Source: Rhodosorus marinus CCMP1338
Taxonomy: Eukaryota > Plantae > Rhodophyta
NCBI GenBank assembly: GCA_029953675.1
Contig: JAMWBK010000003.1
Coordinates: 2,914,001-2,978,000 of the forward strand
Reading direction: 5' to 3'
Length of the DNA stretch: 64,000 nucleotides
The notes beneath the pieces are model-generated. The model saw only the letters and a list, made by a program, of their open reading frames with translations. It did no database searches and was not told the DNA's origin. Below are positions 18,961 to 63,142 of the stretch, piece after piece. Positions within the stretch are counted from its first letter, which is position 1. Each line of letters opens with the position of its first letter. A program made the translations under genes and the position numbers.

Positions 18961-19096
18961 TTCGGTGAAATGGGTTTGGGGGGGATTGATTCGGAGGGTT
19001 ACTAGAGTGGGTGCAAGGGAGTTTTGACTTTGGGTGAAGTGGTGTGTGGGGTGGGACGGGAGCGAGTGTCTTGTTTGTTTTAGTTTCCTTGTTTGA

Positions 19097-19238
19097 GGGA
19101 GGGAGGGAGGGAAGGAGAAGGAGGATTGAGTTGTTGTGAGAGGGACTATTTTTTGTTGTTGTAGGGGTGCTGTCGTTCTTTTGTTGTGTTTGTTGTTTTG
19201 AGTATTTTTGCGGATTTTGGGGGTGGGGTGGGGTCGGG
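19097..19238 (+). other. Two canonical G-quadruplex motifs upstream of the 19280 start
   Basis: GGGAGGGAGGGAGGG at 19097-19111 and GGGGGTGGGGTGGGGTCGGG at 19219-19238. Confidence 0.6.
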
Positions 19239-19279
19239 AGAGGCTGCGAGGGGCTGGTTGTTTTGTTTTTTGTTTGTGA

Positions 19280-21100
19280 ATGACGATTGACATGGCTGCG
19301 TTTGTTCCGGCCGGAGTCTCCTTGGCAAAGGGCCCGAGGAGGTCGACGAATGTTATTTGTCGAAATGATGGCGAGGATAAGCCAAACGCTGACGACAAGA
19401 AAGCGAAGCCCGCGAAGCCCTCAACGGTTGCAAGCGTTGAATCTGCAGCGAAGGCTGCGAAGGATTTGAATGAGCAGAAGACTAAGCCGAAGGGTGCCTC
19501 GGATCTCGACGTGACTAACGAAGTCAAGAAAGAGGTTGCTGGCGAAGATGATGATACCAGCGTACGGGCCGAGGGGAAGAAGGAAGCGAAGAACGGAGCC
19601 AAAATCGAGTCCAAGGCCGGGGCCAAGAATGGTAAGAATGGTAAGAATGGTAAGAATGGTGTCAAGAGTGGCGTTAAGACTGGGGTGAAATACAGAGTAA
19701 AATCGGAGAGAAAAAAATCTCCAACGGTGGCGGTCATCAATGAGCTCAAGTCTGCAATCGAGGCAGTCGGAAAAATTGGGGATACTCTCGGCGTTGTGAA
19801 GCTCGGACGCACAGCGAGGACGAAGCTTACGGAGCGCTTGGAGGAGTGGGAGGCGCTGAATGACAAGAAGGAAGGCGACGCGAAAGAGTTATCGACCAAT
19901 GACAAGATGAAGAGTGCCACCGGTGTTGTCGCTCTACAGACCGGAGAGGCTTCGTGGGATATCTGGAAGAACTTCATGACGCCAACGTTGAGGAAGGTGT
20001 TCGGAGACGGCTCCGATGCGGGCTTCGCAGCTACGTCGCTGGGTATTATGCTGGCCATTTTCTTCCTCCCGTCACTTGTTAGCGGTCCATCTGAAGTGCC
20101 AGAGGCTCCTTCAGGAACGCCTGTGGTCCAGAACAGATTTGGGGCTTCTAAGCCTAGCAGTACCAAAGAGTACGCCAACTTGGTGAAGGACTCATTTGGC
20201 CGACGGAGGAACCTAGTTGCGAGCGTGTCCGTTGAAGGAAAAGTAGTAACAGTGAACGTAGATAAGGCCTACACGAGCCTGGATGAGAGAACACGTTCAA
20301 GCCTGGCTCTGGCTGCCTATGACGCTCTTCGTGACAAGAGAGTTAATACCGTGCTCTTCAGCATGAAATCCGGCGAAGCGATCGCTCGCGTTGATGAAGC
20401 CACGGTTGTATATGCTGGTGAGGCGAAGTTGAAGGAAGAAGGTGTTGGACTGACCGCAAGCTTGCAGGATCAGAAGATTGTGTCCCAGCAGCAACGGAGT
20501 GAAAACGCAGGACTCCTTGAGCAGAAGAATCAGTTGATCGTGGCCCAGCAAGGGGCCGAAGCAGACTTTCAGAGGAACATCAGGCTTTTATCTGCCAGGA
20601 CCGCTGCTGCAGTGGAGGAAGTAGAAGGCATAAGAGCCCAGGTAGCTGGGTTACCCAACCGACAAGTCTTAGTCACCAAACTAGCTGACTCCGAGACGAG
20701 GAGGACTACTGCTCGGTCGGACTTGTTGGACCTCAGCGCCAAGCTATCCTCGACGAGAAACACGGAGGCTGTTGTCCTCGGGTCCGTAAGCGAAACCACC
20801 GTGGGAAATCAAGAACGGGAGGCAAAGGTTCAGAGCATCACGAAGTCATTCAATGCCAAGTCTGAAGAGGCTCTCACTCAAGCTAGGAAGGAAGCAAATT
20901 CTGCGCGGACAGCAAAACTGGCAGAGCTTGCAGCACAGGTCGAGAATGAGAAGGTCGAGCTGCAACGACTCCAGTCAAATTACGATCAGCTGATGGGGGC
21001 CAAGCAAGGAATCTTGGCCAAGCTGCAAGCGGACTTCGATGCAGAAATGGCTACTCTTAGAGAAGCCACTGACCGTGAGGTCGCGAGTATTCAGGCCTGA
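19280..21100 (+). CDS. Putative plastid membrane protein, 606 aa: transit peptide, K/E-rich linker, one TM helix, alpha/beta domain, long coiled coil
   Basis: Uninterrupted ORF. MAAFVPAG transit-like start, (GKN)n repeat near 19627-19660, hydrophobic ATSLGIMLAIFFLPSLV, heptad-rich C-terminus. Confidence 0.85.
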   Translation: MTIDMAAFVPAGVSLAKGPRRSTNVICRNDGEDKPNADDKKAKPAKPSTVASVESAAKAAKDLNEQKTKPKGASDLDVTNEVKKEVAGEDDDTSVRAEGKKEAKNGAKIESKAGAKNGKNGKNGKNGVKSGVKTGVKYRVKSERKKSPTVAVINELKSAIEAVGKIGDTLGVVKLGRTARTKLTERLEEWEALNDKKEGDAKELSTNDKMKSATGVVALQTGEASWDIWKNFMTPTLRKVFGDGSDAGFAATSLGIMLAIFFLPSLVSGPSEVPEAPSGTPVVQNRFGASKPSSTKEYANLVKDSFGRRRNLVASVSVEGKVVTVNVDKAYTSLDERTRSSLALAAYDALRDKRVNTVLFSMKSGEAIARVDEATVVYAGEAKLKEEGVGLTASLQDQKIVSQQQRSENAGLLEQKNQLIVAQQGAEADFQRNIRLLSARTAAAVEEVEGIRAQVAGLPNRQVLVTKLADSETRRTTARSDLLDLSAKLSSTRNTEAVVLGSVSETTVGNQEREAKVQSITKSFNAKSEEALTQARKEANSARTAKLAELAAQVENEKVELQRLQSNYDQLMGAKQGILAKLQADFDAEMATLREATDREVASIQA

Positions 21101-21887
21101 GATCTTTGGCGTAGTCAGTTGGACCTGTGATGTTTTGACCTGAGACCAGTTGCTGACATACCGGATCTTGTGTACGATTAGCTGTATGTCGAATTGGTCA
21201 AGGGGAGGACCGAAGGGAATTGTCACTTGTTTCTATCCCTATATCTGTTAGTTGTTTTCTGTTTAAAAAGTTTCATATTGGGCTTAGCAGACGGTGTCAC
21301 CGCTTCTTACCAAGGGCAACATCAAGTACCCCACCAGTGAACAAAAAGCGCCTCTCAAGAGTGACTTTTAGCTGGTTCTCTCACCGGACGGACGCAGACA
21401 GCTTTCTTTAGACTCTTTTTACCTTCAAGCCAAGAACAATTGATAACCAGCAGACATCGGAAACGGACACCGTAGGGGATTCCTTCGGACGCGGTATTCA
21501 CAGCGGCAACACAAATCCGGCCCAATCATGATTTCACTCCATGGTCTTACTTATCCGCTGCGTTGAGGAGCTCATCCATAGAGAAGCCTTCCAAGATTTA
21601 CAGTAAATCTTTCCTGTATCCAACCTTCGCTTGGAGATAGAAATCAACTACGCGTTTTGTTTCTTGGAAGATAAGTTTCCAAGAGACAGAACGTGACCAT
21701 GGCCGTCCTCTTCGTAGCGAGAAAAGATATCGTTTTCTCGGATTCATCATAGGCAAGTATTGTTGAAGAATTTTGTTGGCCAGAAACGTTACATGGCCCC
21801 ATGATACCTTTCGGTTTGGAGGCGACTGATGATTTGCTGCTATCACAATAAAAATGGGGAAATGGCTGCTTACGGTTTGGGTAGGAG

Positions 21888-23429
21888 GTGGACGCTGTAC
21901 TAGAAGAAGTATTGGGACAGACTGCAGAGGCTCACAGAAGACCTGATATGAGTCGAGTCTCTGGAAGAATCTCCCGTGTACTTGAGTTTCGTGGTGGAGG
22001 AGAACTCAATGAGGGTCGCGCACTCCCGCTGTACCAGATTCTTGGTGAGAACGGGATCATTGCGAAAGGAGTAAAGCACACGGCGTCGAAGCGAGATGTC
22101 AAGGTCTTGACGTGTATGATGAAGCTGCGGATGATGGATAGGATGCTTCTAGAGGCTCAGAGGCAGGGGAGAATACCTTTCTATGCTGCATGTAACGGCG
22201 AGGAGGGAAGCGTGGTCGGGACTGCTGCTGGGCTGTCGTCTGAAGATGAAGTGTTTTCTCAGTACCGAGAGCATGGCGTCCTGCTCTGGAGGGGATTCCG
22301 TTACCAAGACTTTATGGATCAATGCTTTGCTACAAAAGATGACCCTGGGAAGGGTAGACAAATGCCCGTCCATTACACGTCTCCAGAGCTTCATTTCCAG
22401 ACTGTTTCATCCACGATAGCAACACAGGTAATCATCTACCACCGCCGCTCCTAGACGAGTTCACCTGGACGATAAAGAACGCATGATACAGTTGCCGAAA
22501 GCCATCGACGCACTAATGCTGCTTTCTGTCCCTGTCTATCTTGCCATCGCGCGAACCTGCTTTCCCCGAAGATCCCCAACTCCGTTGGAGCCGCGTACGC
22601 TTTGAAGATGGGCAAGGCTAGTCGAATCACGGTGACGTTCTTTGGAGAAGGTGGCACGTCCGAGGGAGACTTCCACGCAGGACTGAATTTCGCCGCTTCC
22701 CTGCAATGTCCAGTTTTGTTCGTTTGCCGCAACAACGGCTGGGCGATCTCAACCCCGGCTTCTCAGCAGTACCAGGGTGACGGTCTCGCAGCTCGTGGGG
22801 TCTCGTATGGAATTCTCTCAGCAGCGGTGGATGGCAACGATCCTCTCGCCGTTGCCCATGCCGTTAGCACTGCCAGAAAACGTTGCCTTGAGACCCAAAC
22901 CCCTGTATTCCTGGAGCTCGTAACTTATCGATTAGGTCCACACAGTACCAGTGATGACAGTGCGTCTTGAATTTGGTCATTCTGACCACTGAGAACCCAG
23001 TCGGTCGGACTGCTCGTCTAATCCAAAAAGTTTTCACATCTAGGTATCTTGTACCGCGGCAAGGAAGAAGTCACTCAAGCCTTTGAAAAGGAGCCCATTG
23101 CGCGCTTGAGGAAGTTCCTGATCAGTTCTGGCTTGTGGAGTACCGAAAGGGAAGAAGAGCTAGCCACGGCGGAGAAGAAGAAGCTGCTCGTAAGACTGCT
23201 GAGACCGCAGACCAACCTTGGCAGCGGTTTGTCCTGCCCGGAAACACGCTGACGAGCTATTCACGCTTTCTGTTCTGAACAGGATGCCATATCCAAAGCT
23301 CAGAGAAAGGAGAAGGCCCCTCCGGCAGATGTCGTTGAACAAGTGCACAACCGGCTTTCCCGCACGCTTGAGAGGCAGCGACGTGAGCTTGTGAGCCGGC
23401 TTGATTCGTACAAGGACAAGTACGGGTAA
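21888..23429 (+). CDS. BCKDHA: Branched-chain 2-oxoacid dehydrogenase E1 alpha subunit (start uncertain)
   Basis: QRQGRIPFY, GEEG, QYREHG, KGRQMPVHY, TPP-binding FGEGGTSEGDFHAGLNFA..CRNNGWAIST and RLGPHSTSDD. Three introns. TAA at 23427-23429. Confidence 0.92.
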
Positions 23430-23828: not shown

Positions 23829-26800
23829 TTAAGAAAGGTCAAAGCCCGCGTTGGAGGTAATAGAGTAAAGAAGCTTCTCACGCAGAATATTCTTGCTCTT
23901 GTACACAGGAAGCTTGAGCAGGTTTACACAAGTTGATGATGTGGGGAGCCGGTCGTCACCCTCCGCCTTATGGATGGCAAGCTGCGGACGTAGATACTTG
24001 AAACCTAACAGCGGTGCTCTTGGGGATGACGTTACGAACTTCAGCAGTTTTCGCTGCTCCTCAGTGTCCATGTCCGCAACGGTTTCCCAAAACCACTGGA
24101 TCACCTCACTCTTCTCGTGGAATCCATGATATTCTGTGTTCTTCTTGAGATCAACAAGATCAAGCTTTGAAGTATCAGCCTGCAAGAGCTGCTGCAATTC
24201 GCTTCGCGAGAACATCTTGACCATTTCCAGATCAACTACGTCTGCTAGTCCGCGAAGTATTGCTTCGGCCTGAGGTTTGATCTGCCTGTTCAGTCTGTAG
24301 TCAGCCACTCGATAAATGTACTCCAACCTGTTCTTCGCGGTTACGCGAACGTTCCCTCCTGTAACGTTGGGCGGAAAAGGCAAAACGAAACACAAAGGCA
24401 ACCAGGAAAAGGGGGGAAGAAGAATCAGGTTTAAGTTTTATACACGACGAGACAAGGACTCGAAGTCGTCTTTTTTCTCACCGTTTACAATAAGATCCAC
24501 CTCTTCACCGCTCAGCTCGCTCTTTACGATAGTGAAAGTTAGCCCCAAGTCTTCGACCGTTTCCGACGGCATTGACTTCACCTGAAGCAGATTTCGGTAC
24601 AATTCGGGGTCAAAAATTCTCAAGTCGTCGAGGTTGCTCACACGACCAACAATTTTTCCGATAAAGAAGTTGGCTAGCGATACGTTAAGCAGCAAGGACG
24701 ACTGTAGGGCCTTTCCGAGCATACGTCCCATGAACTCAAATTGATCCAGATGGTTGTCTCCCACCACAACTTCACTCGCTGGATTCGGATAGAGTTTTCC
24801 CTCCCACGTCTCACACATAAGTCCGTAGTCCGGAGAGAAGATCTTTGGAATCAGCTCGTACATGAATTCCTTGAACAAACCTCCTCCATCGATTCCAGCT
24901 TCTTCCAGACCGTCCGCACTGACAAAGCTGATTCTTATCCTCTGTCGCAGACCTCTCCTCATGTGATTCAGCTTTCTATAAGCCTCTTCCACAATATCAT
25001 CCCTTTTGATTGACACCTGGAGTCTACTGCCCCAGAGGCCAAAGTCGTCGGCTTCGTTCACCGTCTCGTGGAAAATAATGAGCCGTGCATGGAAAGGAAT
25101 CAAAATCGGGCATATGCTAAGCAGCTGATCAACTGCTACCAGTGTTGGAGTGACGGGTTCCTTCGTCAGCACCTGCTTAATCAGTCCCTCGTCAAAATCT
25201 GGAATATAAGAACCTAACACAAACCGAAAAAGCCGGCCTCGTAAGATTCTTGCGCTGTATGTTTGGTGGCTGAAAGAGCTAGAAGTCCATCAACTGTGAA
25301 GATGACGTGCATACCTCGCGTCCAAAAAGATTCCCCGCCAAAAGCACCGCCTTGCTCAGCCTCACAATCTCGGGCGTAGAGCATATTCAGTAGCTTCGCC
25401 GTTGCCTTCTTCGCGTCCAGTCCGTGAGCCCCGAAAACTGTCATGGGCGAGGTGTTCTCGCTGCTCATGACAATGGACCGTTCGAGAACCCCTTTCATCG
25501 TACTTGCGATACCCTTGACCTCCTCTCTCGAGAATGGCATCTCGTAGGAATAGAACTCGCTGGCGTCTTGAACAGCCAACAGAAAGGCGTACACGTGTGC
25601 AAAGAGAACAAACATCGGCGCTCTATCACCCAGAGACATGGTGCTGTCCTGCTGTAGAAGAACCATGTCCGCGAACGTCGGGAAATCCCCTTTGTCCTTC
25701 GCACACCCTTTCCACAAGCGGTATAACAAACATGAGTCTTTGTCTGCAACTTTCGAGTTAACCGCGAGCGTGCTCAGTACCGCGTGCTTGAACTGGACAC
25801 TGTTATCCATAAGCCTAAGGATTAGCGCTGACGCGGAGCTCAGACCGTCGCTCATGAAGATGTTCGTGAGGTGTTTCCTGTCGGACAGCATGGGCGTGAG
25901 CGAATTCAGGAGTGAATCGACTCCTTCGTAGAACTTATAACCAAGTGGCACCAGCGGGTGCTTGCTTTCTTGGTCTTCCGGCTCACTGTCCGAGTCCTGC
26001 TCCAAGTTTCGCTTCTTGAACTTATACTGGGCTCTGCCCAAAAGCTCATTCACGACGATGCAAAAGTCCGTCAGTACTTCTTTGCTCTGTGCGTTGAAGT
26101 TGTCTCTAACGCTGGAAGATATATCGAGCAAGTTGCTTAAGGTAATGACCGCCAGATCCGCATCCACGTCTTCTGGGTCCCTAATCCATTTCGACTTGGA
26201 TAACGATTTGTATAAATCCTCCAGGAAATCATGCCTGGTTAGAACCTCCCTGACGTCTTTCGCGAAGTACTCAACAACACCCGCCTGGGCAAGTATATTT
26301 CTTGTCAACAAACTATACCAATCCGAGTCTTCACCCTCTTGATCTCCGTGCTCGATGTCGTCCTGCGTCATCACGAAGTTCGACCTGTCTTCCCTCAAAA
26401 GCGGCTGCAGGCAGATGCGCATAATAGCTGAAACAGCGTTGGAAATCCTTACTCTGTCCTTGAATTCGAACACACTATTCATCTTGTAACCGGCAAGCAC
26501 ATAGAATCTTGGCGCACATTTCAGAAACACCCCGGCCGAATCTGAGGGTGCTTTCCACGACTCCCTTAAACATAGGTTCAAGGCGGCTTCATGTAGCTTC
26601 ATGTGGAACTCGTACGTCTCAGGGCCAATTCCCGCTATTTCAAACTGGGCCACTCGTACCCCCCAGAACACTACAGCGGCGGCCTCTTCATGTTTTAGGT
26701 AGTCGTTGTAATAAGCACCATCTGTCCGAAGGTCAGAAACCGCGGTTAAAAACTTCTCGAACAGTTGGGAGTCTACGTCAAACGAAAATCCGTCCAGAGT

Positions 26801-27184
26801 CCGTCGATAGCAGTTCGTGACCTTGAGGGGTCTACCAACGTAGATGATTGAGATGTGCCTCAAAATTTCACGGAACAGTTCAACCGTACGACTCCCAGAT
26901 TCCCATAGCTGATAAAGCTCAGCAAGCTTGTATCCAGACTCCCTTCTCACCATCCTCATGTGCTTCCATCGTCGAAAATAACCAGCCAGCAGAGCTGCGG
27001 ACTTCTCCCTACGTCTGTTCTCCGACCTCTGCACTCTAAGCGCTTGTGCGTCTGCCAATATTGACTTTGCATTCCTTTCCTTCACTGAGGATCCCCTCAT
27101 AGACACATTCCGTCGGGAAGTGCTTCCCAAGAAAATACCATTCATGGCGTCTTCAAACCGATCCAACCGAACAGCAGAAGTCAC
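23829..27184 (-). CDS. HECT E3 ubiquitin ligase of the UBE3B/UBE3C (plant UPL6/7) type, 3 exons
   Basis: N-terminal IQ-like segment, IPFHARLIIF, EAGIDGGGLFKEF, LLKFVTSSPRAPLLGF, catalytic RLPTSSTCVNLLKLP and C-terminal GFDLS. Intron 1 is 25314-25199. Confidence 0.93.
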
Positions 27185-29033
27185 CTCTCAAAACTGCCTT
27201 GCTACCCCCTCAACTTGATTTCCGCCTTGAAATTTTATCACAAACAAACAAAATAAAACGCAATCCAGGATTGCAAAGCGTCTTCTTCACGAATCCATCA
27301 CTCAAAACACTCCCAAGCGTGCTTCTCCACCCTCAAAGGCATATGCACACACAAAGAACACAACAAAGACAAACACAAAATGTACACACCAGATCAAACT
27401 CTATTCGACTAAAATACAATCAGAGCGTGCTAATGCTTTCTAACCAAACGTCTTATCAATCACATAGTACTATAAGGATCACACTCTCCTCCTCTACCTC
27501 ATCAACCCTCCTAACATCGTGTTGCCAGCACCTCCGAATACATGAGCCGATGTATATATTTCAGAAACCCCCAAAAGCCCAAATGAAAGGAAAACTCCCA
27601 AGTTCTCGAAAGTTCGCTTTCAACGATAAATAAATACCAAAAAAAAAAAAGAGAGCGAGAAAATGGAGTCGCCCGGCAGTCAGCTGACGGGAAGAAAAAC
27701 AAAATAAAATTCCGTGTTGTCATTTTCCGCTGAACAATGAACAATCATAATATAGTTTATTTTAGATATATTTCTAAATTAAGGTAATATTTTTTATGGA
27801 GAAAATGCCGCGTGGAAGGTCTTTTCCTCAAAATTTTGAACCGAGTTCCTCTAATATACGTCCAAGATCGGACGAAAAAATTCAAGCTTGGCACGTCTAA
27901 ATGTAGACGTGTTTAGACAACAGTTCTATAATTAAGTATATTCATTATTTGAAGATACTTTTGGTATCAGAAGGATTCTAGATTAGGAATCGAAACATTA
28001 TAATCTGTGATATGTCAGCTTTGTTTTGCTCTTCAGTCAGCCATTTCCAATGAGGCCTTAGAATCTGCTTTCAGATGCAAACTTATCTTGAATTGCATAA
28101 TTTTGTAATGCCGGGAGTTCTTGCGTCATGTCCAACAGGGGGGTAACTGGATTCGCATGCTTTTTTGCTCGGTTGTTCGCTTGGAGATGGTTTCATGCAA
28201 AAGCTTAGTCTACGTGCACAACGTTAATCTGATCCCATATAGGAGCTTTAGATTATCAATTCCGTCAGCAATTGCATCTCTATCCAAAATTAAGGGCTCT
28301 AAGCTTCTTTATTTTCTAAACATGAAGGAAAGCAATGAAAAGCTCTTGGCGGGCATGGATCGTTTAGCTGTGTCTGCCTTAGACAAACATCGATCTTTCT
28401 TCATGCGCTACTCGCCTCCTCGCTGAGTTATTCAGTTTCGTGAGCGGGCGCGTGATTCTGCTTCTTACGAACATCAATAAAGTGATATTTCAAAGTCGTA
28501 TATTCAGATGAGAGCTCTACATTTCCAGTTCAAACTTCAGCGCTTTTCCTCCTTCACAAGCCCGGGTTTCCGAGAAATGCGTCTGAATAAGATGAGTCGT
28601 TTTTCGGATGTGTTGAGACCCTTTGTTCGATAGAGGATGCGATCCGCTATTTTCCCTTTCTCAGGGATAGCGTTCTGCCCCTCCGCGCCATCAACCGGCT
28701 TCCCCGCTTCCATTCTTCACCCCAGCGCTATGTTTTTCCGGGAAGAAAGTTGAAAGGACGACGGCCGAAAACTCTGTTTGGGGGTGGGTGCTCTGTTGGA
28801 AATGAGGGTGAGTAAGTAGAGAAGGAACTTGACAAGCGGATGGAGCATGGAAAGTTCATCAAGTAGAATCGTTGGATGCTATGGATTCGTCAGCGTCTAT
28901 CGCGGAACGTTAACTCGAAGAGGTGAGGATTTTGGCTCACAGAGGAAGTGTTCGCTAAACGTGAGGGAGCAGGGGCTGGACAGGGACTGAAGAAGTTTTA
29001 CGGTTTTTGTCTTTGCTTTGCTTAGGTCGTACG

Positions 29034-32591: not shown

Positions 32592-33545
32592 TTAAGGTTT
32601 AGGTTTCACACCTTTAGACATCAGTTCCAGAGTCTCTTTCTCAAAAATGTCAAAGTCAGTAGAATCAGTGGAGGTGAAAGCGATATCCTTTGCGCGTGGA
32701 ATTTCAGAGTCGACAGGCAATTTGGGTTCTTCGGGGTCCCCCTGGGTGGTGGTGCCCACAGGTTTTACCTTGAGGCCGGCTTCACGCCATCGAGTCTTGT
32801 CAGTTAGCACCTACGCGGATGGATGAGATTTCAGCCAAGTATCGAGATCGACATGCCAAACTGAAAGAGAAAAGCATCAAAATTGAGTTAGTTTGAGCTG
32901 GAGGGTTTCCACACTTACCCTGTTAAACGTCTTCTCATCTGCAAGGTCTGCCAATGCCCCTGCTTTGGTCATAGTTAGTGAGGTCCCGGTCCCGTATTCC
33001 TTGAGGAGCTTGCTGATCTGCTCTTCCCCAACGCTGCAGCCTTTTCTGGGTTTGATAGATACAAAAAAATCGCGCGTCTCCGTAACGGGCTTGCTTGGCG
33101 TTTGGCTCTGCTGCAAATCCAGGTCCCGTCGTAGTTTCTCAATCTCCTCCTTCATTCTTTTTCTTCTCTCTTCGGAGAGGCCATACTTTCCACCCTGGGA
33201 TTGGTTTGCGGATTTCTTCGCCCTTGCCTGCATCTCTGCCTCGTACGCATGTTTCTCCCTCGTTTCCAGATCATCCCTCATCTTCCGCCTCTTGACGTCC
33301 ATCTTCCGACGCCGCTCCACATCCTGTGCTGCAACTTTTCTTTCAACATCCACATCCTTCCTAAGCTGCTCATCAGAAAGTATTTCATAGGCGAGGTAGA
33401 CGTTCTCGAACATCTGCGCCGCATGCTCATCACCGAGGTTCTTGTCCGGGTGCCATCGAAGCGCCGCTTTCCTATACGCGCGGCTGATCTCCTTTTGAGT
33501 AGCATTGGGACTCACTCCCAGTACAGAATAATAATCCTTATCCAT
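32592..33545 (-). CDS. DNAJC17: DnaJ-domain protein, DNAJC17/Cwf23-like, 2 exons
   Basis: J domain with HPD, followed by the KRRKMRDDLETREK coiled coil and a degenerate RRM-like C-terminus. Phase-0 intron at 32918-32811. Confidence 0.82.
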
Positions 33546-35189
33546 AGCGTCTTAAATTTTACCCCTTAGATCCTTCAGATCCTCCTTAGCCCACCCCTTC
33601 CACCAGTCTCAGACCTACAACCAGCCCGGCAGCGATACAAGCAAACCGACTTCCGAGAATGATTCCCATGGCAATAGTACACGTAGTACCATTCCCCGTT
33701 CATCCCTGTACTACTAAGTATTTTATTGACTGATTTCAATCAGTATTGAGGTGGTGTGTGAGGCTGGGAAAGCTAACTGATGCAGAAACCCCCGCGTATG
33801 AGCCCAGTCTAATTCTCTACTTATTCTGCTGAACGGCAACATTTAGATGACAATCTTTCTTGAAGCTTATAAGGGCTATCGATGAAGAACCCAAGTCCAA
33901 TCCCCGCGGAAAGGAAGGTCTTGTGAACGATCGGCGGTGAGTCCATTTGATTCCTTTGGCTAAAACCTCTTCGCCCCGTCCAAACTTTGGTTTCTGCGGA
34001 TGAATGCATTGACAAGCTAGGCATGAAATACGACAGATTTCATTGACGAATTCTCGCTGCGTAGGCATACACACGATGACGTTGAAGAGTCATCCAGACT
34101 GCATTTGCATTTTGTGGGCTGAGAAGCTTGGCTTGAAGCGACAAATTGGCTAAAGCTCTAGGCAGCTGCAGATGGGAAAGTGGTTGAGACAGCCGCTCGA
34201 CGCAACACCATTGCCTTTTGCGTCTAAGATCCGGCATCCGTCATTGCTTATGACTACTGTGCGTTTCTATTCTTGAACCTCCTCCTAGATGCTTCGTTGT
34301 CCTAGGTGATGCGTTTGTGCTTAAGAGGATGGGCGTGGACGGTTAACGACGAAGCAGATGAAAACGGGTTCAGGCTTAGTGCATACCAAATCCTGCCGGT
34401 GAACCCCTCGGCATTCACGGTCTCGTAGTCTCTGCTCCAGGCGCCATCGCTTTCCCACACGACGTCGTGTACCCGCACAGCTACCAGCACGGCCTCGAAC
34501 CCAGCTAACCTCAAGCATACTTTGTCCCTGTTTTTTCCTGGAGGCTGTTGTGAAAAACGCGTAGATGTCAACGTTAAGGAGAGTATTGCTCGCGACTTGG
34601 AACCCTGGCGTTCTGCTCTCAGGAATCGTCCACGTTATTTAGGGCAGAGGTGTCCCGCATGGCTTGTCAGGCCGAAGGGTTTCCAAGCAACCTCGCAGTG
34701 GCACGATTGCAGACCTGACCATCTATCTTCTCTCCATCCAAACCGCTTGCTTGTGAGTATGTGTTCAATTCTTTTTGCTTCCCAAGACTATGACTAGTCT
34801 CCTCGGTACATCTTGACCCAACACTAAGTTCGCTTTAAGCTGATCACAGATCTCGCGTCACATGGACTTATTAAATGGCTCCTCATTGGAGCCATCTCTG
34901 ACTCTCTGCCGTTCGAACCCCGCTTTGTCGTTGGCCGCACACTATCAACACGTCTCGCTTCCCCGCTCCTCGCAATAGATAGGCTCTGAACAAACCTGAT
35001 CATTCATCATCAAATGAACGTGTTTGCTTCAATACAGGGATATCTTCGCTACTTTTGAAGCCACCCTTTTCTGTTCTAGCTAGCAAATTCGCTTACGATT
35101 CACCTCGCGCTGCGCTCCTATAGTTTACTCCTGGTCCCTCCTTTGGTCAAATTCCTCTTATCAATTCTCCTCCCTCGCTCTCAATCCAA

Positions 35190-52392: not shown

Positions 52393-53987
52393 TTAACCCG
52401 AAGCTCTTAGAATCACCGGCATGGCTATTCTGAGGATGTCCATGTTCGGATCCAGCAACCGGCCTAGGCCTTCTGCGACGAAAATCGACGCTACGATTGT
52501 TGCGAATTTGGGGTCCAGTTTCACGCTACACTCGTAGCATGTGGAGAGTACATCGACTAAAATATCAGCGATACCGAGCCGCTCAAGTCGCAGGCCACTC
52601 GCGTGAACGTCGCTTACGATATTGGATATGGAAGTGAGGAAATTTTCGACTTTCTCTTCCTCAACCGGGGACTTGCTCCTCTCAATGAGGAGCGATCCCG
52701 CCTTCTGACCATCGCCTGTGACGTGGGATTTTTTGGCCACTTTTAGCAACCCACGAGCGAAGCTGTGAATGGATTCGTTGCGTACACACCTCTCGCGATT
52801 GCCTGGAAAAGATCCCGCATGTCCCTGATTTGTTTCGGCTCAATTGTGAACGCGATACCCGCATCGAGTAGCACCAGCGAGTCTCCGTCGGAACTGACAA
52901 GGACGTTGCCAGGGTGCAAGTCTCCGTGAACAAAATGGTGGTTGAAGACCATCTCCAGGAAGGCTTGAACCCCCAGTCGCGCAAGTTTGCGACGATGACT
53001 GTCATCAAGCTCGTTCAACACAGGCTGTCCGTCCTCGTACTCCTCCACCAGGATCGTTTCAGAGGTAAGCGCTTCCACCGGCTGCGGGAATACTATCTTT
53101 GCATTCCCCAGAAAGTTCGCTCTGAATTTCCACAAGTTGAGTGCCTCGGCTCTCATGTCAATCTGAGGTTGGACCGTGGACGCGAACTCATCTACACATT
53201 CACCAGCGTTGAGAACGTCACGGATCATTGGCAGCTGGTCCATCAGAGCAGCACAATATCTAAGCAGCTCTACGTCCACCTCAGCCCTCCTCCGGACAGC
53301 GGGATGCACTACTTTGACGGCGACCCTCTTTGGATCCTTTCCAATCGTCTCTCCTTTGTAGACCTGGGCGATACATCCTGAGCCGAGAGGCGTTTTTTCC
53401 AAACGTAAAACGCGGGTATTCCAATCCGGACCGAAAACCTTAGCGAGCGCCTCGGCGGTTTCATTCCACTCATGCTGAGGTGCATTGAAGTGAAGGTTCG
53501 ATAATCTTCTACAAAGGAAAGCTGGGAAAAGGTCCACTCTCATTGCAGCCCACTGCAAGAGCTTCACAAAAATTGGTCCTTGTGACCCTGCAACTAGTAG
53601 AGCCCAGTGCCACCAGCGGTCGGCAACTTCCGGAAAGGCAAACGACAGTGCCCAAGCAAATGGGGCAGTGAGCATTAACGGCGCCGTACCAAGCAGGAAG
53701 TAGCAACCACGCAGCGCCACTTCCCACCAACCAACACCATCTGGCTTCACCTCATCCCGCTGTGAGGTCACCGGCCATTCGTTGGTGGTCTGCACCTCAG
53801 TCCTGACCGCGGAATGAACTGGTCCCGCATGCTGAGCAAACGCAACCCCAGCAGGCAATAACCCCACGGCAGCAGTCGCAAGCGAATAGCACGTCGTCCC
53901 AGAGTAACGGATCCTCACACCAGAAGGCCAAAGCCTTGCAATCTGACGACGTACGCTTCCAAACCTTCTAACATTCCTAGTCATCAT
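52393..53987 (-). CDS. ABC1/ADCK (UbiB-family) atypical protein kinase, probably mitochondrial, 2 exons
   Basis: GPIFVKLLQWAAMRVDLFP, PLGSGCIAQVYKG, VAVKVVHP, LVEEY, FVHGDLHPGNVLV, LLDAG and EGLGRLLDP.MDI. Confidence 0.92.
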
Positions 53988-54938
53988 CGGGCCTCCATCC
54001 GGAAAACCTCATAAGAAGAGGAACCCAAGCTCAATCAACACCGTCCATCAGAAAACCAAAAAAAAGGCCCTCGTCATGTCCTGAACCAATTTCAAAGTCG
54101 ATTTCACTGCATAAACGAACAGTATTCCTTCTACATCTGCTTCGTCCATGTCAAATCCTCAGTCTTCGCGTCCAACTATGAACGGCTGGTACCTCATATC
54201 CCAATCTCGGACATCTCCGAATGACGACGATCGATCATCACGGGCAATTTTTACTGACTTTCTTTTTTCAGGACAGACTGTCCCAGTTGTTTTTCTGGGG
54301 CTGAAGTTTTAAGCGGTGGGGGTCGATGATTGGGTTTGTGTAATGGACAAGAGAGAAACGACAAGGTTTCAGACTGATTCAGAGACTTTGAGTGATCGCT
54401 GTTGATTTGTCTGGATCGCTGACTGGTTGTCTGGTACTGTGACCAGCCGCCAAGGGAGACCGCCCTGTCCAGAGTGGTTTGCCGACCTCTAGTGGTGCTG
54501 GAGCTGCTTCTCAAGCTGCGTCAGCATGGCAGAGCTGGATTAGAGTATTCTTAAGCTCACCGTTTCTGCCATTTGGTGGGGTGTCAGATTGGTTGAAGGT
54601 TACGGCTCGCGCCTCCCCTTCCCCGCTTAGCGGCTGGTGTCCGCTCTCCGTTAGAGCGTTTCCAAAAACAAATTGCGGACAAAGGCCATCGGCAGCGGAC
54701 ATCGATTGGTGGTTCTCGATTTCAATCAGGCATCAGGTGACGCGGATTTCGAATAGTTGTCTTGGAGGACTCGCTCGTGGCTATGGCTTGCGATTTTCTT
54801 GATCCATGATGTATACGGTGCTCGTGGAGGTTTTCCTTATTCGTGGATTGCCTCATTTTGGGGCCAGCTTGCCGCGCTTTAGGGCTGGAAGACTTGCAGC
54901 GCTGTAGGATCTTCACAACGAGACACAGTGAAGTTTCG

Positions 54939-57164
54939 ATGGGATCAATCTCTCGTGCAGCAAAGCGAGCAGCAAATCTGAAAGCCTCGTCGGTGTGGGA
55001 TGTTCACCATGAAGCTTTGAGGCGAGCGCGCGAGGGGAGGCCAGTGACTGTTCTTAGTGTTGGTGAACCCGATGCCGAGACTGTGGGTGGAGTTGATGAA
55101 GCAGGGATCGCTGCGATTCGTTCAGGAGCAGGTCGAGTTTACGGAGACGCAGGCGGCCAGCTTGAACTGCGGCAACTTATCTCCCAGAAGTATGAAAAAG
55201 ACTACGGTCTGCAGATCGACCCGCGTCGCGTTCTTGTCACCGCGGGCGCTCAGAATGCTTTATTTCAAACGATGCTAACAGTCTTGGATGAAGGCACTGA
55301 AATCGTCATCCCAGACCCCTGCTATGTAACATACGAACCCACAGTTGTTGCCTCCGGAGGTACCGTAGTTCCGCTCCCGTTGCGAGCTGATGACTCTTTT
55401 CGAATCACCGCGGAAGCTGTTGAGAAAAAAATTACCAAGAAGACGAGGGGGGTACTCATCAATAGCCCAAACAACCCAACGGGAGCGATCGTATCCGAAC
55501 AGGACTTGAACCAGCTGTCGGAGCTCTGCCGCACGCGGGACTTGTGGTTGATCTCCGATGAGGTTTATTCCGACTTCGTCTTTGACGATAAGAAGCACAT
55601 ACCGGCAGCTGGCATAGCCGAGTCTCAAGAATCGACTATTACTATCAACTCGACGTCCAAAATGTTCTCCATGGTTGGGTGGAGAGTCGGATGGGCCATT
55701 GTACCGGAGAGACTCATTAATCCGATGATGGCGGTCAGCGAGGGCATGTTGTTCGGACTTTCTCGAATCTCAGAAGCAGCAGCGTTGAAGGCTTTCAGCG
55801 TGGATAACGATTTTCAAGCCCTTCGAGCTGAATACAGCGCCAGGTTCCGCGTCGTTTTCGACAACCTTCAGGGCGTCCCTGGAATCGTACCTCGTAAAAT
55901 TGGAGGAGGCATGTTCGCACTCGTTGACATTTCTGGTACGGGGATGTCTGCAACTGAATTTGCCTGGAAGCTATTGAACGACTTCGACGTCAGCGTTCTA
56001 CCCGCGGACTCATTTGGTGAGGCTGCGAGTGGCCACGTCAGGATCAGTCTAACAAAGAGTAGAGAGACCCTAAAGACTGCAGTTGAGAAGCTCGCGAAGT
56101 GTGCTGCAGACGCACGAGCAGCGACGCGGGTGGATGGACAGGTCGCAGTTGTCGGGAAGAACGACAAGTATGGAAGCGTCCTTGTATGCCGGGACCGTCT
56201 GGATTCGAGTGCACAACAGTGGTACACAAACGTGTTTGATCTGATTCGTGAGAACGGCGCGGGGGTGCTACGCGTGAAAGAATGGCCCTGTGAGGACGTG
56301 AGCGACGTCACTGCTGCGGTAGTTTGGAATCCACCGCCGGGTCTTCTGGCTAGTCTGCCAAAGCTTCGTATGGTTCAAGTTCTGGGTGCTGGCCTGGACG
56401 GAATCATGCAGTTTGTTTCAGAACTGGATGAGCGCGTGATGGTATGCCGACTTGTCGATCCAATCGCTGTGGAGCGAATGGCCAACTATGTGCTTGCAGC
56501 CGCAATGGATCACGTACGGCATAGAGCGTACACGCGTGAATGCCAGCAAAGAACCAAGTGGGATACCGGAGTTGGTCCAGAGTCTATTAGCTCGACTACC
56601 GTTGGGCTTCTCGGGTTAGGCGAGATGGGCCGTGCCGCTGGCGAGTTATTAGCCCGAGCTGGATTTGATGTCTTGGGCTGGAGCCGGAGCAGAAGGATAC
56701 CAGACGATGACCTTTTCGGCATCCGCAAGCGATTCGTTGGCGGGAAAGATCAACTCTCTGAGCTCTTGAGCAGTTCCGACGTTGTTGTCTGTCTGCTGCC
56801 TCTGACGATAGAAACGCAGGGAATTATAGACAAATCTGTGCTCGGTAAGATGAAAACCGGATCCTCGTTTGTCAATTGCGCACGAGGAGCACATGTGGTG
56901 TTGAACGATTTGCTGGAAGCCCTGAACAGTGGAAAATTGCGAAGCGCGGTACTGGATGTGTTTGAAGAAGAGCCTTTACCAAAGGAATCACCTTTGTGGA
57001 AGCATCCCAAAGTGATTCTCACCCCCCACATAGCGGGTTATGCTGGGGAAGCGTCTGCCGCAAACACAGTGGTTGAGAACTTGAGCAGACTGGCTCGTGG
57101 GGAAAAGCCACTATTCACTGTGAACGTGAAAAGCAGTAACTATCAGCTAACTGATTTCGATTAA
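54939..57164 (+). CDS. Fusion protein: class I/II PLP aminotransferase (AruH-like) plus D-2-hydroxyacid dehydrogenase (GhrA-like), 741 aa, intronless
   Basis: N half: WDVHHEA...LSVGEPD, INSPNNPTG, ISDEVY, INSTSKMFSMVGWRVGW (PLP Lys) and GHVRISL. C half: VQVLGAGLD, VGLLGLGEMG, GWSRS, LLPLT.ET.GII, VNCARG, LDVFEEEPLP and TPHIAG. One continuous frame. Confidence 0.95.
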   Translation: MGSISRAAKRAANLKASSVWDVHHEALRRAREGRPVTVLSVGEPDAETVGGVDEAGIAAIRSGAGRVYGDAGGQLELRQLISQKYEKDYGLQIDPRRVLVTAGAQNALFQTMLTVLDEGTEIVIPDPCYVTYEPTVVASGGTVVPLPLRADDSFRITAEAVEKKITKKTRGVLINSPNNPTGAIVSEQDLNQLSELCRTRDLWLISDEVYSDFVFDDKKHIPAAGIAESQESTITINSTSKMFSMVGWRVGWAIVPERLINPMMAVSEGMLFGLSRISEAAALKAFSVDNDFQALRAEYSARFRVVFDNLQGVPGIVPRKIGGGMFALVDISGTGMSATEFAWKLLNDFDVSVLPADSFGEAASGHVRISLTKSRETLKTAVEKLAKCAADARAATRVDGQVAVVGKNDKYGSVLVCRDRLDSSAQQWYTNVFDLIRENGAGVLRVKEWPCEDVSDVTAAVVWNPPPGLLASLPKLRMVQVLGAGLDGIMQFVSELDERVMVCRLVDPIAVERMANYVLAAAMDHVRHRAYTRECQQRTKWDTGVGPESISSTTVGLLGLGEMGRAAGELLARAGFDVLGWSRSRRIPDDDLFGIRKRFVGGKDQLSELLSSSDVVVCLLPLTIETQGIIDKSVLGKMKTGSSFVNCARGAHVVLNDLLEALNSGKLRSAVLDVFEEEPLPKESPLWKHPKVILTPHIAGYAGEASAANTVVENLSRLARGEKPLFTVNVKSSNYQLTDFD

Positions 57165-60650: not shown

Positions 60651-62281
60651 TCGTTGATAAGTGCCGTCCCTTCCAAGCAACTAATTTGCTCTGAATAAAC
60701 GGATAATGATCGACATTCGAGTGGTCACCGCAATCTCGGGAATACTACTGTATGAGTTCGATGGAGTGTGTCGTCCAATGAACAACGGACCGGCTAACGG
60801 AACGTGAATACCCGAGCAAGATGGTTCCTAACACCTGGCTGTCCCACTTCATTGAGGGTATCGTTCTCTTCACATTCGCAGGTAAACTACGGAACTCGAA
60901 TTCCTACATCCGACGACAAGAGCCTGCACCCAACATTCCCCAAGAAAAAAAAGAAAAAAAAAAGAGTCGTTGCACAAGTGGTACATACCTCCGCGACGGC
61001 GCGTGTCCTCCCTGCGCCCCTCGTGTTGCTCGCGCGGAGGATAATGTCCCCAGGAGAGTGGGACAAACGTTAACCGAGGAAATTTATAAACAAATAAATC
61101 CCAAGATCACCGCTCCGTGAACCCTCTCCCGCCAATCTCGTTTCCTCAAAAATTCTATCCTCCCAATGCATACCAGCGTCCCGATAACCAAAAAAAAACA
61201 GAAACGGGAAATCGATCCCAATCTCGTTTTCAAAAGAAAATCAGACTTCTCGTCTGCATAAAAGCAACTGAACTTCCTTCCTCATGCCCGCAAGAACCTG
61301 TCCGGCTTATCACCCTCTTCCGTCGATTCTTTACCGGTACCTAACGCCTTCCGGAAGAAAACACATTCTTTTCGATAAGCAAAACGCACGAATCCTTTTA
61401 CCCCCCACCCACCCCCCCACCCCCCCCGCCTCCCAAAATAATATACATCATCTATACAATACAAGATGAACTATAATTGAAATACATATCAAATAAAACA
61501 ATATATATACTTAAAATAACAATAAGAAATAGTCGGTCTGCTTGCTTAGAATCTTAAAATATATATCGGCAAGAAGAGAACCAGTGCGAGAAGATATTTT
61601 CAATATTTTACACGGTATCAGTGAACATAGATTAAAATTATTCAATTACAATAGTTATATTAAGTACAAATGTTATTTTAAGTAGTTTATGTACGAAACG
61701 TCGATAAAAAAGGAAAACTACATTCCGTTTGCAGGGGAATCAATAAACTTTTATGATTTTTCATCTCTCGTTCAATACTGAAGGTTAAATTATTTTCGAA
61801 AAACTAGATCCGCATAGCTCAAGTTTTTTGGGAATACTGGAAAGAGATTTTCTCTGTTTTTTTTCTTCTGATGGATTTGGGCAGTGGAAAATACTGGAGG
61901 GGTAAGAAATATTCGCTGGAATTTTATGGTTGTGAAACTATTTTAGAATTATTTATGTTCTTGAGCCATTTTGCAGATTTTCTTCAAGGGGGTTGGCGTT
62001 TTAATAGAAATGTATTGGACCTTTTTTTCTCGAAGGGTTGTTTTTTTTGTAGTGTTTTTTTTGTTGGTACATTTGGGAAAATGGGATGGGGCAGTCTGGT
62101 TTTGATGCTGCTGATGTTGGTGGTGGTGACAAGGGCGTTGGTGTCAAGTGGGACAATTGGGTATATAAGAATGGAAGTGTCTGGATACTAAGCTAGTGTG
62201 AAGAGATATGAGAGGCGTGGGTACGGGATTCAGATCTCTGTGGTGTAAAGTGTATTTGTTTTGTTTTGTTTTGAGTTGGAA

Positions 62282-63142
62282 ATGGAAGGGTTTGTGTCGA
62301 GTTGGACTGGGACCGGAGTGAGGAGTCGAGGGAGCGCTCCCTCGACTTGTGGAAGTGGGCGTGTGCGGTTTGTCTGTTTTCATGGAGCGAATTTTGGTAA
62401 TGGAGATGGGAGGAATGCGCTGATGAAGCTTAAGTATAGAACGACTGAGTGCGTGGGTGAGCGTTCAGTGAAGCATGTGGATGTGGATGCTGTGATTCAG
62501 GAGTCAAACGCAGCTATTAAAAAGCGCGAGTTTGGAAAAGCAGAGGACATTCTGAGTTCGGCCCTACTGGATGATATCCGTCAACCGAAGCTTTTCTTGC
62601 GCCTCGCGCTCTTGGAACAAAAGCGGAGAGACCCAGACCTCAGTCGTAGATTCTTCGAAGTAGCCCTCACTCACAACCCGGAAGACGCAGCTACCCTGCA
62701 AGCTTGGGGACTCTTCGAGAGCAAACAGGGAAATCGGCTTCGTGCTTCGCGCCTGCTGTTCCGCTCTGTTGGCTTGGAACCAAAAAACGTCACTGTGCTG
62801 AGATGGAGACCGCTGAGGTGTGTTGGGGAATTGTACCGTATTGCTGTACAGACATCGAATCCGACTGTTGCACGAAGGAGATACAGAGCATGCCTTCTCC
62901 AGTCCCCAGACTACGTTCCTGCGTATATCTCACTCAGCATGTTGGAAATAAGAACGAACAAGAACGCCGAGGCCGCAAGAGCCGTAATTCTCCAAGGACT
63001 CAGGCTAAGCCCATCCGAAAAGCGCCTTATGACCATATGGGGCCTGGTCGAAGCGATTTTCGGCAGTGAATTTGTAGCTTCTCGATTGTTTCAGGCGAGA
63101 GACCGTCGAACGCGACAAAGAAGGCTTTCCTACCACGCATAA
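62282..63142 (+). CDS. HAT/TPR-repeat protein, probably plastid-targeted RNA-binding (HCF107/Mbb1-like repeats), 286 aa
   Basis: MEGFVSSW transit-like start. Repeats: LALLEQKR..SRRFFE.AL..NP, TLQAWGLFESKQGN...A.RL, YISLSMLE and MTIWGLVE. Confidence 0.8.
   Translation: MEGFVSSWTGTGVRSRGSAPSTCGSGRVRFVCFHGANFGNGDGRNALMKLKYRTTECVGERSVKHVDVDAVIQESNAAIKKREFGKAEDILSSALLDDIRQPKLFLRLALLEQKRRDPDLSRRFFEVALTHNPEDAATLQAWGLFESKQGNRLRASRLLFRSVGLEPKNVTVLRWRPLRCVGELYRIAVQTSNPTVARRRYRACLLQSPDYVPAYISLSMLEIRTNKNAEAARAVILQGLRLSPSEKRLMTIWGLVEAIFGSEFVASRLFQARDRRTRQRRLSYHA

Follow-up and report, generated by a model that had tools for sequence, protein, structure and literature searches.

The stretch of Rhodosorus marinus CCMP1338 DNA analyzed here (contig JAMWBK010000003.1, positions 2,914,001 to 2,978,000; 64 kb, hereafter called the window) contains a gene in which an aminotransferase and a D-2-hydroxyacid dehydrogenase are joined in one chain. 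Pfam recognizes both domains in the same product, PF00155 at residues 35-385 (E = 1.3e-66) and PF02826 at residues 520-699 (E = 1.2e-48). The open frame of the gene spans 54843..57164 on the plus strand and, at 784 codons from stop to stop, is the longest in the window. The positions of the gene, its catalytic motifs, and the other features of the window are collected in Table 1. An earlier note on this DNA had described an intronless frame amid intron-rich genes, and this description is correct. The neighboring HECT, E1_dh, and ABC1 genes are split over several open reading frame (ORF) pieces, and the fusion gene is an intronless outlier in a genome with 24,821 introns in 8,392 genes, or approximately three per gene (PMC10250338).

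Table 1. Features of the fusion gene and of other genes in the window. Positions are those of the window; aa, amino acids or residue numbers of the fusion protein; PLP, pyridoxal phosphate; AspAT, aspartate aminotransferase; AF2, AlphaFold2; UTR, untranslated region.
Feature	Position	Strand	Remarks
Fusion gene, coding sequence	54939..57164	+	complete, intronless; 741 aa plus stop; first ATG at 54939
In-frame upstream stretch, probably 5' UTR	54843..54938	+	no ATG; no N-terminal targeting extension
W20-D-V-H23, clade-specific N-terminal motif	54996..55007	+	common with AruH-like bacterial enzymes; alignment
Class I/II PLP aminotransferase domain, AruH-like clade	55041..56093	+	aa 35-385; PF00155
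Gln105, at position of Thermus AspAT Lys109	55251..55253	+	'tagaqnalf' versus 'tvggkqalf'
D207-E-V-Y210, Asp to PLP pyridine N, Tyr to O3'	55557..55568	+	motif, alignment
S238-T-S-K241, Schiff-base lysine motif	55650..55661	+	motif, alignment
Arg368, alpha-carboxylate binder	56040..56042	+	motif, alignment
Interdomain linker	56115..56171	+	aa 393-411, ~20 residues; 400-409 predicted disordered (AF2)
GHRA-subfamily D-2-hydroxyacid dehydrogenase, complete	56172..57143	+	aa 412-735; substrate-binding and NAD(P)-binding domains
Trp463, GHRA-specific Trp of beta3-alpha3 loop (= E. coli GhrA Trp45)	56325..56327	+	alignment; invariant in fused family
G559-L-G-E-M-G564, dinucleotide-binding GxGxxG	56613..56630	+	motif, alignment
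S582-R-S-R-R586, NADPH fingerprint [ST]R[ST]X[RK]	56682..56696	+	aligned to 'wsrtrk' of E. coli GhrA
Catalytic Arg649, Glu678, His697	56883..57029	+	aligned to E. coli GhrA R227, H275; unchanged in all seven fused sequences
ABC1/UbiB-type kinase gene, first exon	52743..53987	-	PF03109, E = 2e-50; head-to-head with fusion gene
HECT E3 ligase fragments	23832-25289	-	domain divided between two frames
2-oxoacid dehydrogenase E1 component fragment	21885-22451	+	gene fragment
DnaJ fragment	32880-33551	-	gene fragment
bZIP fragment	11442-12038	+	gene fragment
Zinc-type alcohol dehydrogenase fragment	1427-1954	+	gene fragment
TPR protein fragment	62249-63139	+	gene fragment

The fusion gene is a resident, transcribed gene of the host, neither a chimera nor a contaminant. 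A protein search returned the identical protein (P0001) on a 3.35-Mb contig, and the CCMP1338 assembly is chromosome-level with 13 contigs longer than 1 Mb (PMC10250338). A full-length transcript of R. marinus CCMP769 (MMETSP0011) carries a 738-aa ORF that is marked 'complete' and is 88% identical to the window product (P0002), confirming a real fusion whose halves are transcribed together as a single chain. No stop codon interrupts the junction (56100-56180). The frame runs through continuously in the window, and likewise in the transcript and in a 59%-identical genomic homolog, with the linker conserved. The GC content of the gene (0.53) and that of its third codon positions (0.54) match adjoining host ORFs, and codon frequencies correlate with r = 0.81. 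The assignment to the host follows from the continuity of the transcript across the junction, the matching composition, and a conserved linkage to the ABC1 gene.

An assembly or annotation error, or bacterial contamination, with the two enzymes really being separate, was considered because the gene lacks introns although the genome is rich in them, and because homology searches find that the nearest stand-alone relatives of both halves are bacterial, in line with the inference of the earlier note. This explanation is effectively refuted. The same fusion is present in an independent transcriptome, and a further six contigs or clusters carry it beside eukaryotic genes (ABC1, WD40, PIKK kinase, and beta-adaptin), and one fused homolog (L101) has an apparent intron of ~75 nt. 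In addition to its host-like composition, the window gene lies 55 kb into a series of ordinary eukaryotic genes.

Upstream of the first ATG, the frame stays open over a leader whose counterpart in a JGI sequence (P0117; LQSCRIFPTGHGEVS) precedes the same Met, such that the leader is conserved and probably untranslated. Trp20 lines up with the start region of bacterial aminotransferases. The protein opens directly with the aminotransferase domain and the leader lacks an ATG, suggesting that the fusion protein is probably cytosolic.

The aminotransferase half matches PF00155 with 225.7 bits against a cut-off of 19.7, over profile positions 2-361 of 361. In an AF2 model, the predicted local distance difference test (pLDDT) score of this domain is mostly above 90, and the domain superposes on AspAT and prephenate aminotransferases with Foldseek target-normalized template modeling (TM) scores of 0.90-0.95. 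The catalytic set of K241, D207, Y210, N179, and R368 is present and invariant in the fused family. The closest stand-alone relatives are proteobacterial enzymes of 391-404 aa with 39-44% identity (Pseudomonas, Halomonas, Paracoccus, Hypericibacter), many of which are named arginine:pyruvate transaminase or AruH. They have the W..H and GDPD motifs in common with the window protein, and their consensus (AAAWxIHxRA...LLSVGDPDFDTP) agrees with the AruH-like pattern that had been noticed in this half. The likeness is to proteins annotated with that name; the characterized AruH enzymes of P. aeruginosa and P. putida were left out of the trees described below.

Two positions set this clade apart. 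W20 and H23 are invariant in the alignment of bacterial relatives, and the motif is kept in the fused homologs with an available N-terminus, with L121 carrying Ala at position 23. The motif is not present in Thermus AspAT in a pairwise alignment. Gln105, which is invariant both in the bacterial-relative alignment and in the fused proteins, occupies the position of Thermus AspAT Lys109, the residue that binds the distal carboxylate. The presence of Gln at this position throughout the AruH-like clade indicates that the N-terminal half is, as judged from its residues, no classical Asp/Glu enzyme. The best NCBIfam model is that of the GntC-type PLP cyclodehydratase (NF041364), an enzyme of an arginine derivative, which scores 293.9 bits, below its cut-off of 415 and with a slight margin over generic AspAT models. 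The methionine aminotransferase subfamily model (NF006569, MtnE/YbdL-like) gives 206.7 bits, below its cut-off of 420.

The reductase half matches PF02826 with 165.3 bits against a cut-off of 25.1. It aligns to residues 25-303 of the 312 residues of E. coli GhrA and to the Xanthobacter autotrophicus GhrA structure 5vg6, on which it superposes with a Foldseek target-normalized TM score of 0.86. The equivalents of E. coli GhrA W45, A65-G66, R227, and H275 are all kept. A Trp in the beta3-alpha3 loop is found only within the GHRA subfamily, and the motif [ST]R[ST]X[RK] in the betaB-alphaD loop is its fingerprint for NADPH specificity (PMC6303947). Both features are found here, as Trp463 and S582-R586, which supports the proposal that this half is GHRA-type with a preference for NADPH. 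The WSRSRR loop (581-586) varies in one of the fused lineages, that of P0238. The closest relatives of this half are 309-aa bacterial GhrA-like proteins with 40-46% identity, and the GhrA equivalog model NF012013 scores 185.7 bits, below its cut-off of 403. These comparisons indicate that the C-terminal half is a member of the GHRA subfamily, but not an equivalent of E. coli GhrA.

Each motif quoted in the earlier note was found in its place (STSK, DEVY, and Arg368 in the aminotransferase; GLGEMG, WSRSRR, and Arg649/Glu678/His697 in the reductase). Both active sites are complete, with the catalytic residues unchanged across seven fused sequences. The linker between the domains differs in length among the fused homologs. 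The mean pLDDT of the AF2 model is 90.6, and values below 50 occur only at residues 400-409 and 736-741. The predicted TM score of 0.65 leaves the mutual orientation of the two domains unfixed by the model. No solved structure spanning both domains was returned by the Foldseek search, in which every query-normalized TM score was ≤0.51.

Each half belongs to a known family, whereas their combination is very rare, undescribed, and found only in eukaryotes. A word-indexed search of 5.8 billion proteins yielded three fused clusters only. Two more, P0238 (740 aa, 37% identity) and P0375 (29% identity, with a gene call truncated at the N-terminus), came from an exhaustive phmmer search of 1.84 billion representatives. 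L101 and L121 were found in a metagenome scan and fall within the P0238 lineage (53-58% identity). Seven fused sequences are thus on hand, and they represent three deep lineages. Another word-indexed search, made with an alignment of fused proteins, missed P0238 and P0375, although both were query rows and are present in the collection, and thus absence from that search is weak evidence. No bacterial or archaeal fused gene was found in the two protein searches or in the GTDB and metagenome scans, and no account of a fusion of this kind turned up in a literature search, consistent with the earlier note, whose author knew of none. The fusion is so far restricted to eukaryotes, and to algae where the organism is identifiable.

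The genomic neighbors differ among the fused lineages and mark them as eukaryotic. In the red-algal group, an ABC1 kinase gene adjoins the fusion gene both in the window and in L001, the contig of the 59%-identical homolog (L001:3144-4592), where the arrangement is tandem; the two kinases are 44% identical over 406 aa. We regard the kinase gene as a conserved linkage and not as a functional part of the fusion. In the high-GC lineage, the conserved neighbor is a WD40 gene upstream of the fused gene (L008, L101, L121), and L121 also has a FAT/PI3K/FATC kinase (PIKK) and a DUF760 gene. A beta-adaptin gene lies near the P0375 gene on 27-kb Tara Oceans contigs, and an ammonium transporter gene is found ~1.4 kb downstream of the P0375-type fused gene in all four contigs. 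This type of gene (L009:263-2545, L015:2419-4683) has been called as pieces of 86 aa and 634-640 aa, whereas tblastn gives one frame throughout. It probably encodes the entire protein, with either a short intron or an error where the call is split. The P0238 and P0375 lineages have GC contents of 61-75%.

The history of the fusion was examined with neighbor-joining trees made separately for each half from five fused proteins and ~70 stand-alone relatives, with 200 bootstraps. The fused proteins form one clade in both trees with the same inner topology, (P0001, P0002, P0003) and (P0238, P0375). Bootstrap values for the whole clade are 88/200 for the N-terminal half and 154/200 for the C-terminal half, and those of the subclades are 196-200/200. 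Orthologs are also similarly conserved in the two halves (87/90% and 59/59% identity). Since both halves share the same topology, the data fit a single old fusion that was later kept under selection on both activities. The modest bootstrap for monophyly of the fused clade weighs against this history, and long-branch attraction is possible.

A proposal in the earlier note that two bacterial genes were acquired and fused did not gain a donor. None of the 80 best bacterial loci, obtained by scanning GTDB with the AruH-like alignment, has a fused gene or a GhrA-type neighbor, and a bacterial operon ancestor was rejected. A weak 2-hydroxyacid dehydrogenase (2HADH) match lies within 8 kb in only 4 of the 80, and the inspected Pseudomonas cases are a sugar-acid (kgu-type) operon. 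A recent event in this alga is likewise not borne out, because the fusion is old and common to several eukaryote lineages. The sequence relationships fit halves that descended from bacterial-type enzymes, were fused once long ago, and survive in few eukaryote lineages.

Other arrangements of related enzymes were encountered in the same searches. P0242 (674 aa) is an AruH-like aminotransferase with a C-terminal ABC-transporter ATPase domain (PF00005), which reflects either gene-call run-through or a real fusion. P0009 (L005:6554-9332, L006:5-2783) is a Caulobacteraceae 'aruH' that stands head-to-head with a FAD_binding_4/FAD-oxidase_C gene (GlcD/D-lactate dehydrogenase-like), and thus also brings an aminotransferase together with an enzyme of D-2-hydroxyacids. 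In the tree of the C-terminal half, the fused clade has P0335 as its nearest stand-alone GhrA-like protein (L099:188-2520, L100:51-2383); the gene of P0335 is followed, after a gap of 3 nt, by a gene of the aromatic amino acid ammonia-lyase family (PF00221).

For the function of the fusion protein, we favor a generic two-step mechanism, to which we assign a probability of roughly 0.7, whereby an L-amino acid would be converted via its 2-oxo acid to a D-2-hydroxy acid with NADPH. The N-terminal PLP aminotransferase would take the alpha-amino group off the L-amino acid and hand it to a 2-oxo-acid acceptor. Given the Gln at the distal-carboxylate position, pyruvate or glyoxylate is a more probable acceptor than 2-oxoglutarate. 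The C-terminal GHRA-type dehydrogenase would then reduce the resulting 2-oxo acid to the D-2-hydroxy acid. Such a reduction could pull the reversible transamination forward and keep a reactive oxo acid from building up. We infer the direction of flux, the coupling of the steps, the localization, and the substrate. Coupling or channeling is suggested by the fusion itself, and the reductive direction is suggested by the NADPH fingerprint together with the general behavior of 2HADHs, most of which act as reductases (PMC6303947).

Two bacterial contigs carry a GhrA-like reductase gene followed by a class-I aminotransferase gene (L155:495-2782, L159:2306-5280); the L159 pair has a divergent LysR regulator, and an IS integrase lies nearby. 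This LysR-controlled pair is independent support that both enzyme types work together. The reductase-then-aminotransferase order would also suit the reverse, biosynthetic direction, in which a D-2-hydroxy acid is oxidized and then aminated according to the logic of SerA/SerC or McyI. McyI is described as oxidizing (3-methyl)malate to supply (3-methyl)aspartate (PMC11977255), and on two contigs an AruH-like relative stands beside a gene resembling FAD-type D-2-hydroxyacid or glycolate oxidases. This direction is nonetheless very unlikely for the window protein. Reduction is the direction suggested by its NADPH fingerprint and its place within GHRA, 2HADHs that natively act as dehydrogenases being nearly always dependent on NAD+ (PMC6303947), and the aminotransferase comes first in the fusion.

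Returning to the reductive two-step mechanism, there are considerations that weigh against it. For this protein and its fused homologs, the mechanism is a prediction from sequence. Identity to named relatives is ~40%, and orthology to AruH is not established. Moreover, the GHRA subfamily is described as promiscuous and its own physiological role as undetermined (PMC6303947).

If the mechanism holds, our tentative choice of substrate is L-arginine or a related amino acid of the basic or guanidino type, which would proceed via 2-ketoarginine to D-2-hydroxy-5-guanidinovalerate (D-argininic acid). 2-Ketoarginine is the only intermediate that is experimentally tied to both parent families. It is made by AruH, and the P. 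putida enzyme shows a fitness phenotype in arginine catabolism. For the reduction of 2-ketoarginine, E. coli GhrA has a kcat of 6.6 per s and a kcat/KM only 24-fold below that for glyoxylate; it shows no activity on phenylpyruvate, 2-ketobutyrate, or 3-mercaptopyruvate. Trp45 of the E. coli enzyme, the counterpart of Trp463, contributes to this reduction.

Genomic contexts of the bacterial relatives point in the same direction. The genes of the two closest stand-alone aminotransferases (43-44% identity) are head-to-head with an arginase-family ureohydrolase gene. Near both are a DUF1989 gene and a polyamine-type ABC importer, with a CN_hydrolase or an aldehyde dehydrogenase in one locus each. 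The genes of other relatives of the N-terminal half come after those of ABC importers of the polar-amino-acid or PotA type. Near the 80 GTDB AruH-like loci, in contrast, the scan found no arginase-family gene. The arginine lead is thus built on the AruH-named relatives, the ureohydrolase contexts, GntC as the top NCBIfam model, and the activity of GhrA on 2-ketoarginine.

Several findings argue against arginine. The canonical aruH-aruI context of Pseudomonas and alphaproteobacterial relatives was rejected as a model, as it is absent at the inspected loci, and no thiamine-pyrophosphate decarboxylase (AruI-like) adjoins the window gene or any inspected relative. The residue after the GHRA Trp differs among the fused proteins (N, K, D, A, or Q), which argues against a conserved guanidinium-binding site. 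The neighbors of the stand-alone proteins that branch beside the fused clade (P0042, P0335) are unrelated, namely a group II decarboxylase and an aromatic ammonia-lyase; these contexts are unlike each other and uninformative, and were dropped as a clue to function. Also, D-argininic acid is not known to have a role in algae. Hydrophobic oxo acids are taken by other GHRA enzymes (PMC6303947).

Small hydrophilic substrates are an unlikely alternative to arginine, although characterized GHRA enzymes prefer glyoxylate and hydroxypyruvate (PMC6303947) and the nearest relatives of the C-terminal half are annotated as GhrA. In one variant, serine would be converted via hydroxypyruvate to D-glycerate, which could feed digeneaside (mannosylglycerate) synthesis or a cytosolic photorespiratory bypass. 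In another, glyoxylate would serve both domains, yielding glycine by the aminotransferase and glycolate by the reductase. Digeneaside accumulates in Stylonematophyceae, and glyoxylate is the best amino acceptor of MppQ, another arginine-handling aminotransferase. Digeneaside is a minor solute, however, and the N-terminal half clusters with AruH-like enzymes and not with the serine:glyoxylate and serine:pyruvate aminotransferases, which are of class V. In addition, genomes have been sequenced from other red algae with digeneaside or floridoside synthesis, and the protein searches returned no fused homolog from a named red alga except Rhodosorus.

The earlier note had proposed the entry to synthesis of dimethylsulfoniopropionate (DMSP), in which methionine is converted to 4-methylthio-2-oxobutyrate (MTOB) and then to D-4-methylthio-2-hydroxybutyrate (D-MTHB), the two reactions with which the transamination route begins. 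We consider it distinctly unlikely that the fusion is this missing pair of methionine aminotransferase (MAT) and MTOB reductase (MR) in an alga without known MTHB methyltransferases. The claim that the genes for these two steps are poorly defined is accurate. In literature up to 2026, we found no report of either gene; a June 2026 review names the methyltransferases and DsyD alone, and the 2024 paper on DsyGD and DSYE labels both steps merely MAT and MR, with a predicted reductase beside dsyGD being inactive (PMC11306096). The chemistry fits a D-specific 2HADH with an NADPH fingerprint, and GHRA enzymes are said to have a large, hydrophobic pocket, with some members taking 2-ketobutyrate or phenylpyruvate (PMC6303947). 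The algal MTOB reductase, studied by Summers and colleagues in 1998, is reportedly NADPH-linked and yields the D-enantiomer. P. aeruginosa AruH takes methionine as a minor substrate.

Specific support for a DMSP role was not found. The aminotransferase scores 207 against 420 bits for the methionine-aminotransferase family, and its clade points to basic substrates. The methionine aminotransferase of Ulva depends on 2-oxoglutarate, a dependence at odds with Gln at the distal-carboxylate position. E. coli GhrA, as noted, did not reduce 2-ketobutyrate or 3-mercaptopyruvate. No methyltransferase gene is found within the window. Among the fused genes recovered, two lineages of which carry no taxonomic assignment, none came from a named lineage of high DMSP producers; the word-indexed search with the fused alignment had, however, missed two of its own query rows. 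Nothing in the sequence would favor methionine over other substrates.

The earlier note would have taken an organism that makes no DMSP as a refutation. A genus-level literature compilation classes Rhodosorus as a 'Low' DMSP producer (<50 mM), and both R. marinus MMETSP transcriptomes are listed without DSYB, DSYE, or TpMMT (PMC11306096 Supplementary Table 3c). Production is therefore on record for the genus, but the committed step is without a known gene in this alga. If the listing is right, other DMSP genes must exist. If the fusion does serve this pathway, a further, so far unrecognized methyltransferase is implied, and the fusion would be one concrete candidate for the first two steps. 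The remaining probability, beyond arginine, serine or glyoxylate, and methionine, falls to other amino acids.

A metagenomic protein of 649 aa (P0008, L007:235-2184) joins a class-I S-adenosylmethionine methyltransferase domain (PF13649/PF08241) to an AruH-like aminotransferase that is 39% identical to the N-terminal half of the window protein; the next gene downstream is of the glyoxalase family. P0008 was rejected as a clue to DMSP, as its methyltransferase domain scores only 24 bits against a DSYE sequence and the fusion is unrelated to DSYE.

Elsewhere in the window, two antisense open frames overlap at 18961-21097 (19280-21097, plus strand, 606 aa; 18961-20268, minus strand, 436 aa), the first of which has no Pfam match. 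A 657-aa open frame (25217-27187, minus strand), also without a Pfam match, adjoins the HECT pieces at 23832-25289 on the same strand. No tRNA genes were found in the window.

If the two steps are coupled, the fusion protein would be a natural single-chain catalyst from L-amino acid to D-2-hydroxy acid, a conversion that usually takes two enzymes, and would provide a pathway context for the GHRA subfamily. It is also a clean example of bacterial-type genes that were fused and long retained in few eukaryote lineages. With AruH of the Pseudomonas arginine transaminase pathway, it has in common the class-I PLP fold, the N-terminal W..H motif, and a Gln where AspAT has Lys109, and several relatives of its N-terminal half are found in guanidino, polyamine, or basic-amino-acid uptake and catabolism contexts. 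Unlike AruH, to which it is not an established ortholog, it is eukaryotic and carries a fused reductase, whereas AruH is followed by AruI, the decarboxylase of 2-ketoarginine. Its C-terminal half shares the Arg-Glu-His set, the GHRA Trp, and the NADPH loop with E. coli GhrA and 5vg6, at 40-46% identity to bacterial GhrA-like proteins. In contrast to these, the window protein falls below the equivalog cut-off, is fused to an aminotransferase, and is algal, in a subfamily that is almost entirely bacterial (PMC6303947).

The LysR-controlled bacterial pair couples a GHRA-type reductase, 37.5% identical to the C-terminal half, to a class-I aminotransferase, but as separate genes in the reverse order. 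Because its aminotransferase is only 24-28% identical to the N-terminal half, this pair is not the ancestor of the fusion. The same chemistry, an aminotransferase followed by a 2HADH-family reductase, is used by plants that make rosmarinic acid (tyrosine aminotransferase and hydroxyphenylpyruvate reductase, HPPR) and by lactic acid bacteria, in which an aromatic aminotransferase and D-lactate dehydrogenase lead to phenyllactate. Those routes differ in acting on aromatic substrates with separate proteins, and in drawing their reductases from other 2HADH subfamilies (GHRB, under which HPPR is listed, and LDHD; PMC6303947). DsyGD, a methyltransferase joined to a decarboxylase, has unrelated domains and reactions, such that no similarity in sequence would be expected, and has been shown to act in DMSP synthesis, whereas the function of the window protein is a prediction. 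The design is nevertheless the same, with two consecutive pathway steps placed in one chain.

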